Shown piece by piece: positions 5,216-25,551 of a stretch of DNA of 39,191 bases. Source of the DNA: Octopus bimaculoides (taxonomy: Eukaryota); NCBI RefSeq assembly GCF_001194135.2, contig NC_068986.1, positions 107,200,448 through 107,239,638 of the forward strand, given 5' to 3'. Numbering within the stretch: the stretch's first letter is position 1; every line of letters starts with the position of its first letter. A program made the translations under genes and the position numbers. The notes below the pieces were generated by a model. The model searched no databases. It was not told the origin of the DNA and saw nothing but the letters and a program-made list of their open reading frames with translations.

Positions 5216-5281
5216 TAAGTGAAACGAACTGTAAACTGCTTTATGCACTGTATGAGGAAAGACATTTTAGTTTGTACTTAC

Positions 5282-5404
5282 TTTTGTACAAAGTTAGGAG
5301 TTGGAATAACACGCACATCATTTTCATACACTCACCCGCGGTTATATAAAAGCCAAACGTATTATTGCAAATGCATTTCCCGTTATGTTGACATCCTTTA
5401 CATT
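5282..5404 (-). CDS. Gene A Cys-module exon: CKGCQHNGKCICNNTFGFYITAGECMKMMCVLFQLLTLYK
   Basis: Acceptor atttatttttgtatag, donor gtaagt. 123 nt, phase 1-1. Same length, phase and C-x2-C-x5-C-x-C-x12-C-x4-C spacing as 25312-25434. Frame matches ORF 5241..5459. Confidence 0.9.
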
Positions 5405-5563
5405 CTATACAAAAATAAATGCATTCATCAATGATAAGATAGAGAAATACATTTATCAATAATAAAATAAAATAACTTATATTTCGTTATTTTAATAAAA
5501 GTGGATGTATCAATGTTTAATTGAAATATTGGTTGGATTTAATTCAGTCATAATTAGAATGTA

Positions 5564-5950
5564 TGGAGGCGCAATGGCTCAGTGGTTAGAGCAGCGAACT
5601 CGCGGTCATAGGATCGCGGTTTCGATTCACAGACCGGGCGTTGTGAGTGTTTATTGAGCGAAAACACCTAAAACACCACAAGGCTCCGGCAGGGGATGGT
5701 GGCGAACCCTGCTGTACTCTTTCCCCACAACTTTCTCTCACTCTGACTTCCTGTTTCTGTTGTGCCTGTAATTTAAAGGGTCAGCCTTGTCACACTGTGT
5801 CACATTGAATATCCCCGAGAACTACGTTAAGGGTACACGTGTCTGTGGAGTGCTCAGCCACTTACACGTTAATTTCACGAGCAGGTTGTTCCGTTGATCA
5901 GATCAACTGGAACCCTCGACGTCGTAAGCGACGGAGTGCCAACAACAACA
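5564..5950 (+). mobile_element. tRNA-headed SINE family 3, full length
   Basis: A box tggctcagtgg, B box ggtttcgattc, (CAA)n tail. TSD-like aattagaa(t/c)gt on both sides. Confidence 0.9.
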
Positions 5951-6012
5951 ATTAGAACGTGGGACGTCAGAAAATAATAGCAGTGCTTCCATCAATTCCT
6001 AGGGATATTTGA

Positions 6013-6049
6013 ATATCTGAAGAAGGAACTTTATTCCGAAATATTGTAT
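6013..6049 (+). ncRNA. Minimal type-I hammerhead-like motif, probably decayed
   Basis: atat-CTGAAGA-a-GGAA-cttta-TTCC-GAA-ATAT-t-gtat: core, 4-bp helix II, palindromic helix III, 4-bp helix I with a wobble. Confidence 0.5.
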
Positions 6050-6243
6050 CAGACTATGGATGATTAAATTACAACAGTTATTATAGTCCATTGTTTGGAT
6101 TACCGTGCATTGTTGTCCCGTTCAAAATATTTTCGTCTTTGGAAAATATATTGGAAATTAGGCGAAAGTTCTTCATTGATACAATGTTTCAAAGTTATGA
6201 CGTGAAAAAATATTCTGGTAGGTGTGTTATTTGCACTGATAAA

Positions 6244-6568
6244 GGAGCACTCCGTCGGTTACGACGACCAGGGTCCCAGCTGATGCGATCAACGGAACAG
6301 CTTGCTCGTGAAATTAACGTTCATGTGGCTGAGCACTCCACAGACACGTGTACCCTTAACGTAGTTCTCGGGGATATTCAGCGTGACACAGTGTGTGACA
6401 AGGTTGGCCCTTTGAAATACAGGTACTACTCATTTTTGCCAGCTGAGTGGACTGGAGCAACGTGAAATAAAGAGTCTTGCTCAAGGACACAACGCGTCGC
6501 CGGGAATTGAACTCATGACCTTACGATCGTGAGTCGAATGCCCTAACCACTAAGCCACGCACCTTCAC
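6244..6568 (-). mobile_element. tRNA-headed SINE with a different central domain but the family 3 tail
   Basis: A box tggcttagtgg, B box gagttcaattcc, gtgtccttgagcaagac domain. 6246-6413 aligns to 5775-5938 inverted. Confidence 0.9.
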
Positions 6569-6755
6569 TATTTGGACAGATAGAGAAAAGAATTTAGCAT
6601 CAATTTNNNNNNNNNNNNNNNNNNNNNNNNNNNNNNNNNNNNNNNAGACAGAGAGCAATGAAAGAATTGGATATCGTCATCTGAAAGAGAAGAGTGATGG
6701 AGAGAGAGAGAGGCGGTGGAGAGAAAGAAAGAGAGAGCCATAGAAACTTGAGTAA

Positions 6756-6985
6756 GGCGGTGAGCTGGCAGAAACGTTAGCACACCTGACGAAATGCTTA
6801 GCAGTATTTCGTCTGCCGTTACGTTCTGGGTTCAAATTCCGCCGAGGTCCACTTTGCCTTTCATCCTTTCGGAGTCGATAATTAAGTACCAGTTACGCAC
6901 TGGGATCGATGTAATCGACTTAATCCCTTTGTCTGTCCTTGTCTGTCCCCTCTATGTTTAGCCCCTTGTGGGCAATAACGAAATA
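6756..6985 (+). mobile_element. SINE family 1, full length, 12-bp TSD
   Basis: agaaacttgagt at 6742-6753 and 6986-6997. B box ggttcaaattcc. Confidence 0.92.
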
Positions 6986-7078
6986 AGAAACTTGAGTTTT
7001 CTTATGCCAAAAAAAAAAAAATAGAGATCCAATACAACATCATATCGAAACCTAAGAATTAAAACTCTTTAAACCTAC

Positions 7079-22315: not shown

Positions 22316-22814
22316 GTAAGCAAAGTTACGAATTAAGAAAAGCAATATATAAAAATAATTATGATACAGAATTTGCAAATATTTTGAATAACTTTACGGC
22401 AATTGATACACAGGTATATAAGATGGGCCTTAAATTCAACAGTAAGTATTCATGGAAAAACTTTATGTATTAGAGCATGTACTTTAGGCTCAATTTCACA
22501 TAAATTACGTGAAGTGATTATTGGAGTAAGACTGTTGGCGAAAAGCTCTTGTAATATACCATAAAATACAATAATTTTTGATATCCCACGTAACTTTTCA
22601 TCAACATTATAATAATATTTTTGATGAAATTCAGTGCTATTTCAGCGATAACTATAGATATTTAGCTTATTTCATCCTAAATGAAGACTGTTTTCTTCCC
22701 TTAAACGTGTGACAATCACGTTTTATTTAATTTTTGTTGTTTCTTTTTTTGCTTTTTGTTTTTACTGTGTATCTAGAACCGCAGTGTACATGTCTTTCTT
22801 GTATTATGACAATA

Positions 22815-22952
22815 ATCCTTTCTACCAAAGGCACAAAACCTGAAATTGGTGGAGGGGATTAGTCGATTACATCAGCCCCAGTGTTTCACTGGTACTTGAT
22901 TTATCGACCCCGAAGAGATGAAAGGCAAAGTCAACCTAGATAGAATTTGAAT
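22815..22952 (-). mobile_element. SINE family 1 fragment
   Basis: ggtacttgatttatcgaccccgaagagatgaaaggcaaagtc core. Confidence 0.75.
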
Positions 22953-23525
22953 GAATTATGACAATAATGTGGGAATATGAAAGTTATTTAGTTGATATTT
23001 CTAGCAGGTCGAGTGAATGTAGTTTCTCCTTTATTGACTTATGCTGTCTTTGTTGGCGAATACTATACAACAGGTCGTGTTTCTACTTGATTAAACTTTT
23101 TAATCGCAACAAAAATGTCATGTTGAAATTCAGAGTGTAATATCCGGGTGAGAGAGATGCAACAGAGACGAGAGAGAGAGAGAGAAGGAAAGAGAGGGAG
23201 AAGGAATGAGAGAGGTGTGAAAAAGAAAGTAAGAAAGAGAAAGGGATAGCAAAAAGAGGAGAGAGGAAGAGATAGAAAGAAGACAGGGAACGGCCTCCCT
23301 GTTTGAGGCTGGTACTCATCATGTTTAATAAACTTTAGAACATGAAACCAAATGACTTATTCGAAGAAACAACACCTTGTTCAGTCTAGAAATAGCACTC
23401 CCCGTTTAACGATCGTAAGTCTAGCATATTATCCACAATAATCACATCTCATTAGATAAATGTTGGCACTGAAAATTATAAAATATATAAAGAGGCCTTT
23501 TACAAGTTTTAAATTTTTCTTACAG

Positions 23526-23604
23526 ATGAATATATATCCGATACTCTTGTTTCCAGTTGCTGTCATGTCCCCGGGGATTATTTTGCATAATACTGCAGCA
23601 GATA
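23526..23604 (+). CDS. Gene B signal-peptide exon: MNIYPILLFPVAVMSPGIILHNTAAD
   Basis: Acceptor aaatttttcttacag directly followed by ATG. 79 nt, donor gtaagt in phase 1. Joins 25312 in frame. Confidence 0.8.
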
Positions 23605-23738
23605 GTAAGTTTTCATATTCATAAATTTCTGCAAAGGTATGAGGCTCTTAGATCCACAATACGCTCTGAGATCCACACCTCTTCTCCTCTCGACACCATC
23701 AATATTTCAATTTTCCAGATATTGTCGTAAATATATTT

Positions 23739-24166
23739 CTAAAATCTCTTTCGAAGCTCAATATCACTCTTGTAAACATCACACTTTTGTAAATATCACA
23801 CTTGTGTAAGTTTTTACTACGAGTGGCCTAGCATGTAGAAAAATTAGTCAATAGACTATATACACCAAAATATCATTTATGGGACACAAGAAAACATTTA
23901 CAAGTAAGCCAGACAACAAAACGTTGAAGTCTTCTGAAAGTCATTACATGCAAACATACATACATACATGCATAGTACATATGTAAGTATGTGTCTGTGT
24001 GTATATATATATATATATATATATATATNNNNNNNNNNNNNNCTAAAATCTCTTTCGAAGCTCAATATCACTCTTGTAAACATCACACTTTTGTAAATAT
24101 CACACTTGTGTAAGTTTTTACTACGAGTGGCCTAGCATGTAGAAAAATTAGTCAATAGACTATATA
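23739..24166. repeat. Identical 124-bp direct duplication across a 14-N gap
   Basis: 23739-23862 equals 24043-24166; the second copy starts at the gap edge. Confidence 0.9.
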
Positions 24167-24831
24167 TTATTCATATAAATACAGTGTACATTTAAACACA
24201 TAAGAGGTATCCATCAAAGGATTCCCTTCACGCTAGAAAGAACAGCTAAAATCTAAACCACTATTGGGGATACATTTTCGAAGGGAATGAAGAATAAAAA
24301 CATTTACCATCTATCTCCTGGACCAAGGTTTCTAGCTATATATTAGCAAATAAAATAATTTGCTAGGCGGATCTTTCATCAACGGGTACGTCAATATTAA
24401 GGATATAAATACGAAGCAATCCAGCCTGTGCCCCTTGCTTATATATTATAATCTTTCAAATCCATCGCGCAAGCGCAGTTTTTTGTCGGCAGCAAATAAA
24501 ATAATGCCAGCGTTTCTTCGAAAAATTTCAAAAAATTATCAATAATTACTAAATATCAAGGTAAGAAACAAATTGCTGGATTGCCTCGATGTTTAATCTT
24601 GGCGTGCCTATTGATGAAGGCTCTGCCTAGCAAACTATTTTATTTGCTAATATAGAGCTAGAGACCATGGTCCAGAAGATAAATGGTAAATGTTTTTATT
24701 TTTCATTCCCTTCGAAATTCATCCCTAATAGTGGTTTGGATTTTGGCTATTCCTTCTAGCGTGCTTGGTATCCTCTGATGGTTACGCCTTATGTGCTTAA
24801 ATGTACACTGTATTTATATGAATAATATATA
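24161..24831. mobile_element. Fold-back element with about 265-bp imperfect inverted arms, TA-flanked
   Basis: 24161-24425 is the reverse complement of 24575-24831 with substitutions. Confidence 0.88.
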
Positions 24832-25311
24832 TACATATGTATATATACACGTATTCATGTATGTCTGTGTGAATATATATATATATATATATATATATAT
24901 ATATATATATGATCGTCTGGAAGATTTTTAATATTCATTAACCGTGTAAACCATTATCTATGTGTCTATCAAGTTTTTTGTGTTCCCCGTTGGAACATAG
25001 TCGTTATTCGTGATATTACGGTATGTTCGTCAATATACATTAATACTTACAATTAATTGTAATATAATACTTAAATCTTCGGATATTTTAAATATGCTAG
25101 ACCACTGGTTTAAATTGATGTTAATTGATTGATATCAATTTCTAAATTCATTATTTAATTTACATTAATAGTTAGGTGTATTTTATTCATACAGAAGCTA
25201 CATCATAAGTATTAACGTAAATAGAGACATTGTTCAAGCTTCACAAACAGTGAAATAATGATTCCTTTCGTTTTTGTTGATAAATGTATTTTGTGCTTTC
25301 ATTGTTTGCAG

Positions 25312-25434
25312 ATTGTACTGGATGTTACTACGATGGACATTGCTTTTGTTCAAATCAGCTTGGCTTACATTTAACACAACGTTCTTGTCTGATGATAGAA
25401 TGCAAAAAACATCAACTATTAGTTCATAACGTAT
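25312..25434 (+). CDS. Gene B Cys-module exon 1: CTGCYYDGHCFCSNQLGLHLTQRSCLMIECKKHQLLVHNV
   Basis: Acceptor gctttcattgtttgcag, donor gtaagt. 123 nt, phase 1-1. Paralog of 5282-5404 with near-identical intron edges. Confidence 0.9.
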
Positions 25435-25551
25435 GTAAGTAAAAACTAAAATGTTAGTCTCCAGGTATTTCATATACATTCCATTTTCTCTGAATTTCCT
25501 TGTCTATATAATTGCTTAAATTCTGACACGTTATTGTGATTTCGGTAACAG

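Follow-up and report, generated by a model that had tools for sequence, protein, structure and literature searches.

A 39,191-nucleotide window on chromosome CM046606.1 of Octopus bimaculoides (about 107,200,448 to 107,239,638 in GCA_001194135.2, gaps included) contains two look-alike exons of 123 nt, referred to here as exon A (5282-5404, minus strand) and exon B (25312-25434, plus strand). Our analysis indicated that these are very probably the second exons of two paralogous four-exon genes, gene A and gene B (LOC128248178). Both genes belong to a small, uncharacterised octopus family of secreted proteins with 12 cysteines, in which the edges of the introns were probably kept as splicing signals. 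The family is real but a fairly ordinary fast-evolving one, and a venom-like system of diversifying toxins was not demonstrated. Coordinates below are those of the window, the whole stretch analysed, unless another locus is named.

Two homologous exons

Exons A and B were each bounded by AG and GT and were in phase 1 at both ends. The exon A peptide (xCKGCQHNGKCICNNTFGFYITAGECMKMMCVLFQLLTLYK) and the exon B peptide (xCTGCYYDGHCFCSNQLGLHLTQRSCLMIECKKHQLLVHNV) agreed at 14 of 40 residues, and the exons at 66 of 123 nt. All six Cys stood in register, with the common spacing C-x2-C-x5-C-x-C-x12-C-x4-C. Re-reading the sequence thus reproduced the length, phase, Cys spacing and identity that a first-pass annotation of this DNA had given. 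A tblastn search of the window with the exon A peptide matched exon B at E=3.6e-9 and found no third copy of the exon. This match and the matching gene structure upheld the inverted paralogue pair proposed in that annotation, with the relative orientation taken from the scaffold. Judged from their sequences, the two exons are homologous, true paralogues in opposite orientation. Pfam gave no meaningful match to either 41-aa exon peptide, and Rfam and tRNA scans of the window gave no match.

A small family with 12 invariant cysteines

The peptides of exons A and B were combined into a HMMER profile, and 1.84e9 proteins were searched with it exhaustively. The matches were O. bimaculoides proteins only, namely XP_052825023 (P0001, 8.6e-21), P0002 and P0004, together with P0003. 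The last of these, a 976-aa low-complexity repeat protein, was taken as a spurious match and rejected as a family member. P0002 (LOC106872966) and P0004 (LOC106869804) are both paralogues of 131 aa. When the family profile was run in a word-indexed search, the only additions were the O. sinensis orthologue of LOC106869804 and a 69-aa O. vulgaris fragment, P0008. A word-index homologue search with the exon B peptide alone gave no candidate, which is a limit of the word index; the exhaustive profile search succeeded.

The four O. bimaculoides paralogues lay on one chromosome, at about 90.7, 103.75 and 107.2 Mb, with LOC106872966 and LOC106869804 lying 3.4 and 16.5 Mb away from the gene A/B pair. 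They were roughly equidistant from one another, at 30-39% identity. Thus A and B are neighbours but did not arise by a recent inverted duplication. On sequence comparison, the four form a small family, so far seen in Octopus only and apparently restricted to it.

The gene structure was uniform. Exon lengths of 123, 132 and 68 nt and phase 1 at all introns were identical in six of the six genes examined, which were gene A, gene B, the two other O. bimaculoides paralogues, and the O. sinensis and O. vulgaris orthologues. A complete family gene encodes about 131-133 aa, with a signal peptide in exon 1, six Cys in exon 2, four in exon 3 and a two-Cys tail in exon 4. The mature regions of the family, gene A included, aligned without gaps and had 12 invariant Cys. 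In gene B and the two other paralogues the signal-peptide exon had its ATG directly after the acceptor, while gene A had only a decayed relic of this exon. The signal peptides of the family were about as divergent as the mature regions. There was no pro-region, and the mature part measured 107 aa. The first-pass annotation had described a family of secreted peptides. The signal sequence in gene B and two other paralogues and the invariant Cys agreed with secretion, but the products are two-module proteins of 107 residues and not short peptides. It had also put the system forward as a candidate for an undescribed one. We found no literature on any family gene, protein or UniProt identifier, or on an octopus Ly6 or three-finger protein, but gene B is already annotated, so the system is not strictly undescribed.

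Gene B encodes XP_052825023, the uncharacterized protein LOC128248178 isoform X2, which is 133 aa long, has a signal peptide and contains exon B exactly. The coding part of its exon 1 (23526-23604, plus strand) carries the ATG, directly after the AG acceptor, and the signal peptide MNIYPILLFPVAVMSPGIILHNTAAD. Exon 3 (36205-36336, plus strand, 132 nt) encodes the second module, LCKDHSGHCMRNDQVWPSVYYNICVTHYCETHRLQTTLATRFDL. Exon 4, on the plus strand at the equivalent of 41036-41103 (27511-27578 of L001), lies about 1.8 kb past the end of the window. Isoform X1 uses an alternative exon of 67 nt (38598-38664, plus strand). Its inclusion puts the last exon into another frame and costs the protein its final two Cys; isoform X1 is therefore probably non-productive.

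The remaining exons of gene A were found with the family hidden Markov model (HMM) on six-frame open reading frames (ORFs). Exon 2 itself, which carries the first six-Cys module, matched the family domain at E=5.6e-17. Exon 3 (3580-3711, minus strand, 132 nt, phase 1-1, AG/GT bounded) encodes the second module, NCIDDSGKCLSAGDFRFGLHKRRCVAFYCKVYKDDIKLNIQYDV, and matched at E=1.4e-16. Exon 4 (1555-1622, minus strand) comprises 68 nt including a TAA stop, encodes VCNVGEVLKKRRKFIYKNVDEC and matched at E=4.7e-5. The minus strand carried the three exons in the proper order, and their AG/GT sites and phases fitted. Their spliced product of 107 residues aligned to the family without gaps, with 12 of 12 Cys present. 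This product was absent from the protein databases searched, and we therefore regard gene A as unannotated in O. bimaculoides. The O. vulgaris locus L005 carries the gene A orthologue, collinear with the window, and exon 3 was identical to it at 124 of 129 nt. P0008 is this orthologue, with a model that begins inside exon 2, at an internal Met.

The P0008 model, at L005 10001-15532 (O. vulgaris OX597819.1), lacks the first six Cys; exon 2 is present in full at L005 9888-10010. We also noted a long (GAT)n-type microsatellite (5018-5266, minus strand), which begins only some 50 nt past the donor of exon A and continues into a gap of 807 N. It yields a spurious 83-codon ORF rich in His and Arg.

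We considered exon 3 as an internal duplicate of exon 2 and rejected this, as a profile-profile comparison of the two exons was not significant (E=0.31). HMMER reported a second stretch in P0001, and the sole ground for a duplication is that the two halves of the structural models are alike in strand pattern. The exon-3 donor of gene A (3561-3579, minus strand, gtatgtataacctaaaattt) matched the exon-2 donor element at about 16 of 20 positions by eye, and this likeness was much lower in the other paralogues. It could be a remnant of an exon 2/exon 3 duplication, or chance.

Arrangement of the two genes

The window contained 16 runs of N, none of which abutted exon A or B or was crossed by a reading frame. 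The gapless O. vulgaris locus L005 was collinear with the minus strand of the window from 11844 down to 1402. This collinearity spanned the gaps at 2885-3525, 4201-5007, 6607-6645, 8247-8256, 9343-9794 and 10836-11285, so contig order and orientation were verified across six gaps. The exon order of gene B across its own gaps agreed with the RefSeq protein. Genes A and B face away from each other on CM046606.1. Since the three gaps that separate them (12523-12680, 14199-15127 and 18207-18860) were unbridged, their relative orientation is only as good as the scaffold.

Two exons of 123 nt in phase 1-1 with intronic motifs in common also resemble a cluster of mutually exclusive exons, and the window has 16 gaps, with the three between A and B unchecked. 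The small contig that carries exon A might then be mis-oriented, and A and B would be tandem mutually exclusive exons, or repeated modules, of a single gene. However, gene A has its own exons 3 and 4, which sit on two further contigs with order and orientation preserved, and the entire stretch from 11844 to 1402 was collinear with the gapless O. vulgaris assembly. The gene B protein uses exon B only, and exon A appeared in none of the three gene B isoforms. We rejected mis-orientation and mutually exclusive exons on these grounds, and consider a single gene extremely improbable.

Two perfect direct duplications flanked short gaps, one of 124 nt (23739-23862 and 24043-24166, around the gap 24029-24042) and one of 91 nt (28881-28971 and 28982-29072, around the gap 28972-28981). 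They have the look of overlapping contig ends left unmerged, which would be an assembly artefact, and not of real tandem repeats.

Conserved intron edges

The 20 nt on the donor side of exon 2 were identical at 19 positions between gene A (5262-5281, minus strand, gtaagtacaaactaaaatgt) and gene B (25435-25454, plus strand, gtaagtaaaaactaaaatgt). These were the two matches to the element in the window, against 0.01 expected from shuffles. Upstream of exon 2, the 15-mer TTGATAAATGTATTT occurred exactly at 5445-5459 (minus strand) and 25277-25291 (plus strand); with at most two mismatches it had four matches in the window, against 0.61 expected. Both similarities were as the first-pass annotation had described them and went far beyond chance. 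The upstream patch common to A and B extended to 19 of 21 nt. In gene A it reads ttattgataaatgtattt (5445-5465, minus strand), a candidate branch-point region, and in gene B ttgttgataaatgtatttt (25271-25291, plus strand). Gene A had a second copy of the 15-mer, matching at 13 of 15 positions, closer to the acceptor at 5417-5431.

All family genes were then stacked at their splice sites. The exon-2 donor sequence gtaagtaaaaa(N)ctaaaatgt was present in gene A, gene B and LOC106869804 (in both species of the latter), and was weaker in LOC106872966. The motif ttattgataaatRtaYtt, 14-40 nt upstream of the exon-2 acceptor, occurred in gene A (two copies), gene B and LOC106872966. Shorter conserved patches followed the exon-1 donor and the stop codon. 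From +7 to +22 of the exon-2 donor, paralogues were identical at 11-14 of 15 positions (73-93%), compared with 52-64% within exon 2. Farther than about 30 nt from the splice sites, the introns of paralogues gave no alignment. The conserved introns reported by the first-pass annotation were thus confined to some 20-30 nt at the splice sites, and the remaining intron was not alignable between paralogues. Gene conversion was rejected as the source of the donor-patch identity, because the adjacent exon ends, the last 12 nucleotides of exon 2, differed between paralogues.

These observations suggest how variable exons and conserved edges may have come to stand side by side. The duplications appear to be old, as paralogue synonymous divergence was saturated, and nearly all intron sequence would have been randomised since. 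The short patches would have survived as splicing signals under purifying selection from the ancient duplication onwards. The motif TTGATRAATGYATTT, 14-40 nt upstream of the exon-2 acceptor, contains a match to the branch-point consensus yUnAy and may act as such. The extended exon-2 donor, GTAAGTAAAAA-CTAAAATGT, might be an extended 5' splice site or an intronic enhancer. The contrast would then reflect near-neutral turnover of non-Cys residues and constraint on splice-proximal elements, not globally conserved introns.

Rates of change

Orthologue rates were calculated over exons 2-4 by the Nei-Gojobori method (NG86). Between O. bimaculoides and O. vulgaris, gene A showed 24 nonsynonymous and 3 synonymous changes (nonsynonymous divergence, dN, 0.10; synonymous divergence, dS, 0.05), with a dN/dS ratio (omega) of 1.9 (1.94). 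For LOC106869804 and its O. sinensis orthologue, the counts were 16.5 and 6.5 (dN 0.067, dS 0.114), with an omega of 0.59. No orthologue ratio was significantly off neutrality, about 4-5 synonymous changes being expected in each case. By hand calculation, about 5 of the 27 gene A differences would be synonymous under neutrality, and 3 were seen. Between paralogues dN was 0.58-0.79, dS was saturated at 0.85-2.0 and omega was 0.35-0.75.

Introns of the same orthologue pairs diverged by 0.066-0.12, and by 0.22 in one microsatellite-rich intron. Amino-acid-changing sites therefore move at about the neutral rate, since dN was close to intron divergence. The sequences suggest that non-Cys residues turn over at about this rate while the Cys codons, the frame and the splice sites are kept. 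As a check on its proposal of a diversifying family, the first-pass annotation had suggested comparing dN/dS and the divergence of introns and exons. The pattern it had named as counter-evidence, exons better conserved than introns and a dN/dS far below 1, was not what we found, as dN was 0.10 and 0.067 and intron divergence 0.07-0.12. Diversifying selection was nevertheless not demonstrated, because neither omega, 1.9 or 0.59, was significantly greater than 1 on these small counts.

If positive diversifying selection acted on a peptide family with a venom-like, immune or chemosensory role, its exons would change faster than neutral and its introns would be conserved. The fixed Cys scaffold with variable loops fits such a family, and so does the omega of 1.9 for gene A. 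Exon 2 alone had 21 nonsynonymous and 2 synonymous changes over the two orthologue pairs together, its dN in gene A was at least the intron rate (0.158 vs 0.09-0.12), and the exon-adjacent noncoding patches were better conserved than the exons. However, the nonsynonymous excess in exon 2 was not significant (about 4.2 synonymous changes expected and 2 seen; binomial P about 0.18, hand calculation). Omega was below 1 for LOC106869804 and between paralogues, and the introns could be aligned only near the splice sites. The signal peptides were no better conserved than the mature regions, no pro-region was present, and the mature protein measured 107 aa. Pfam gave no toxin or Ly6 match, no three-finger structure was among the top 50 matches, and the paralogues number only four. 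We consider positive diversifying selection of this kind quite unlikely.

The 5' end of gene A

The first exon of gene A was represented by a relic at 7125-7169 (minus strand), which reads IALYLLLVISNIVAD and then gtaaat. The ATG of the family is missing from it, and its donor has phase 0 where phase 1 is required by exon 2. The sole ATG upstream of the relic, at 7210, runs into a TAG after 14 codons. These defects were identical in O. vulgaris. Within 7-10 kb upstream of gene A there was no conserved ATG with a signal peptide and a phase-1 donor. Scans of the window and of O. vulgaris for a signal-peptide-like ATG with a phase-1 GT donor gave no candidate in common, and a family-motif scan for the start exon found none. 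Two candidates were rejected. One, in O. vulgaris (L005 4283, MKIPIFYDF...), lies within a 394-nt insertion absent from O. bimaculoides. The other, a hydrophobic read-through ORF just upstream of exon A, has no in-frame ATG and was judged to be an effect of the T-rich polypyrimidine tract.

Gene A might thus be a pseudogene, possibly a transcribed one, whose start exon decayed before O. bimaculoides and O. vulgaris split and whose exons 2-4 have been drifting neutrally. The state of the exon-1 homologue in both species and the lack of a conserved start exon upstream are what this would predict. The omega of 1.9, the exon divergence (0.085) near that of introns and the decay of the exon-2 donor element in O. 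vulgaris also agree with it, as do the missing annotation in O. bimaculoides and the internal-Met start of the O. vulgaris model. In contrast, the frame, the 12 Cys, the exon lengths and all six splice dinucleotides have been kept in both species. In simulations, sequences given 27 random substitutions retained both an open ORF and the 12 Cys with P=0.03. For the 323 nt of gene A, neutrality predicts about 3.5 indel events and none was seen, so that the joint neutral probability is about 0.03 x 0.03. From the sequence, the scaffold of gene A (frame, Cys and splice sites) appears clearly constrained.

The region around and upstream of the relic also argued against a pseudogene. A block of 306 nt (7109-7414, minus strand) was 96.1% identical to O. 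vulgaris, compared with 88.9% for the other noncoding DNA of the locus (binomial P=5e-6), which points to a working 5' region; we presume it to be the promoter or 5' exon region of gene A. Because this block is over-conserved and exons 2-4 are constrained, we favour a live gene A whose start has escaped recognition over a pseudogene that died long ago. We take the pseudogene seriously but hold it to be somewhat unlikely. The block 7109-7414 holds a tRNA-like stretch, GGGTTCGAAATTTCCCC, and Rfam gave no match there.

Predicted fold and nearest known systems

Pfam found no domain in the full-length family members, with no match to UPAR_LY6, toxin, PSP94, fn1 or VWC; UPAR_LY6 and toxin models gave none even at E up to 10. 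A PDB sequence search with the family profile gave no relevant match. The AlphaFold models of P0001 and P0002 had a mean predicted local distance difference test (pLDDT) of 65 (core 76-85) and 75 (core 84-92), respectively. Both folds were all-beta and comprised a pair of similar three-strand units plus a short helix at the C-terminus. The best PDB matches of both models, weak ones, were pairs of fibronectin type I (FnI) modules (3gxe, 3ejh, 2cku and 9a3z). Among the top 50 PDB matches of either model, both of moderate confidence, there was no three-finger or Ly6 structure. UniProt names P0002 (A0A0L8H3R2) a "UPAR/Ly6 domain-containing protein", and the absence of such structures from these matches leaves this name unsupported. 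On the models, the family protein is best described as a secreted, two-module, FnI-like, disulfide-rich protein.

The mature protein would be secreted, disulfide-locked and all-beta, with two small hairpin modules like an FnI pair. From this architecture and from the mode of evolution we infer an extracellular role in recognition. The protein would most likely bind or recognise other molecules outside the cell, its scaffold being fixed and its loops free, or driven, to change.

The FnI pairs 8-9FnI (3gxe/3ejh) and 2F1-3F1 (2cku) resemble the modelled octopus proteins in having two small tandem disulfide-held beta-hairpin modules. In the fibronectin gene each FnI module is encoded by one symmetrical phase-1 exon, and the octopus genes likewise have one module per symmetrical phase-1 exon. 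A C-K-D-x-x-G-x-C-x-x-x-G-E-x-W-like motif in octopus module 2 recalls the FnI/VWC consensus. However, FnI modules have four Cys, paired 1-3 and 2-4, with the spacing C-x~23-C-x-C-x~8-C, whereas the octopus family has 6+4+2 Cys and a C-x6-C-x14-C-x4-C spacing.

Ly6/uPAR proteins are also small, secreted, Cys-rich and all-beta, but the octopus family lacks their C-terminal CCxxxxCN-type motif and has no adjacent Cys pair. Conotoxin and snake three-finger toxin families likewise combine a fixed Cys framework with loops that vary, have multi-copy secreted products and conserve the noncoding sequence beside their exons better than the coding sequence. Unlike them, the octopus family has no hyper-conserved signal or pro-region, and its mature product is a two-module protein of 107 aa. 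Its intron conservation covers only about 20-30 nt, its omega is not significantly above 1, it has four genes instead of dozens, and it gave no three-finger fold match. The likeness to these toxins drawn in the first-pass annotation was therefore not supported, as neither Pfam nor the fold search gave a three-finger or Ly6 match, there was no conserved signal or pro-region, and only four paralogues are known.

In evolutionary behaviour, the closest analogy is beta-microseminoprotein (MSMB/PSP94; PMC3268785), which includes the egg-capsule pheromone beta-MSP of the squid Loligo. These are likewise small secreted proteins of about 100 residues, with beta-rich disulfide-locked domains and a four-exon gene, and their primary sequence evolves rapidly while the Cys are kept. 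In New World monkey MSMB an intron is reportedly more strongly conserved than the exons, and third-position bias is absent (PMC3268785). The octopus family differs in having 12 Cys instead of 10, another spacing and no CC pair, and it gave no PSP94 Pfam match. No sequence relationship was detected, as an hhalign comparison of the family profile with human MSMB gave a probability of 0.2%, and MSMB structures were not among the top fold matches of either model.

Weight of the evidence and implications

Several observations weigh against our interpretation of the two genes. The head-to-head arrangement of A and B depends on the three unbridged gaps, and hence on the scaffold alone. The O. vulgaris copy of gene A has not kept the exon-2 donor element, with 4 changes in 20 nt, so the constraint on this element is not universal; the upstream motif is absent from LOC106869804. 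The FnI matches (probability 0.8-1.0, target-normalised template-modelling score 0.45-0.51, about 89 aligned columns) were weak, with E=0.009-0.3 and none at or below 0.001, a root-mean-square deviation of about 5 Å and a sequence identity of about 12%. The AlphaFold models rest on alignments of 4-5 sequences, and the Cys spacing of the family is unlike that of true FnI modules, with no Pfam domain found. Neither a start codon nor a signal-peptide exon could be recognised for gene A in O. bimaculoides or O. vulgaris, and its product might stay unsecreted or might never be made. Finally, the function of the family is one that we infer.

By analogy with squid beta-MSP, a bolder version may be envisaged. 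In an Octopus-restricted FnI-like 12-Cys family, the loops would be under real diversifying selection and would serve extracellular recognition specific to a species or sex, such as signalling by egg, sperm, mucus or chemotactile cues. The small symmetrical exons would depend on the intronic elements CTAAAATGT, after the donor, and TTGATAAATGTATTT, before the acceptor, and gene A would be live through an unrecognised 5' exon. We regard this combination as rather unlikely.

Taxon-restricted, fast-evolving secreted Cys-rich proteins are often behind lineage-specific reproduction, chemical communication, defence and venom, and few examples have been characterised in cephalopods. What is new here is the definition of a small octopus family without a Pfam domain or literature, and the unannotated gene A with an O. 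vulgaris orthologue whose current model is truncated. A misleading "UPAR/Ly6" database label on one paralogue was corrected. Ordinary splice-proximal constraint together with near-neutral loops can produce variable exons beside conserved intron edges, which calls for caution in scans that take this pattern for a toxin signature. Real diversifying selection, if seen in tissue expression or site models, would raise the interest of the family.

Other features of the window

Several large inverted repeats or palindromes with arms 77-99% identical lay at 24161-24831, at 11383-11537, at 9815-10136 with 10502-10824, and at 5759-5939 with 6247-6429. These intronic and intergenic inverted repeats look like elements of the miniature inverted-repeat transposable element type. 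A short interspersed repeat family (73-90% identity, both orientations) had copies at 6754-6989, 21165-21403, 13284-13489, 2283-2463, 20990-21164 and 22812-22951.

Decayed transposon ORF fragments were located at 34372-34542, 37002-37695 and 16794-17794 on the plus strand and at 30549-32715 on the minus strand. The first of these had a sub-threshold Pfam match to HTH_48 (Mos1 transposase), and 17519-17794 had one to Zn_SUZ12, an unrelated SUZ12-type zinc-domain model. The other transposon stretches resembled long interspersed nuclear element reverse transcriptase or zinc-knuckle sequences by eye, which Pfam did not confirm.

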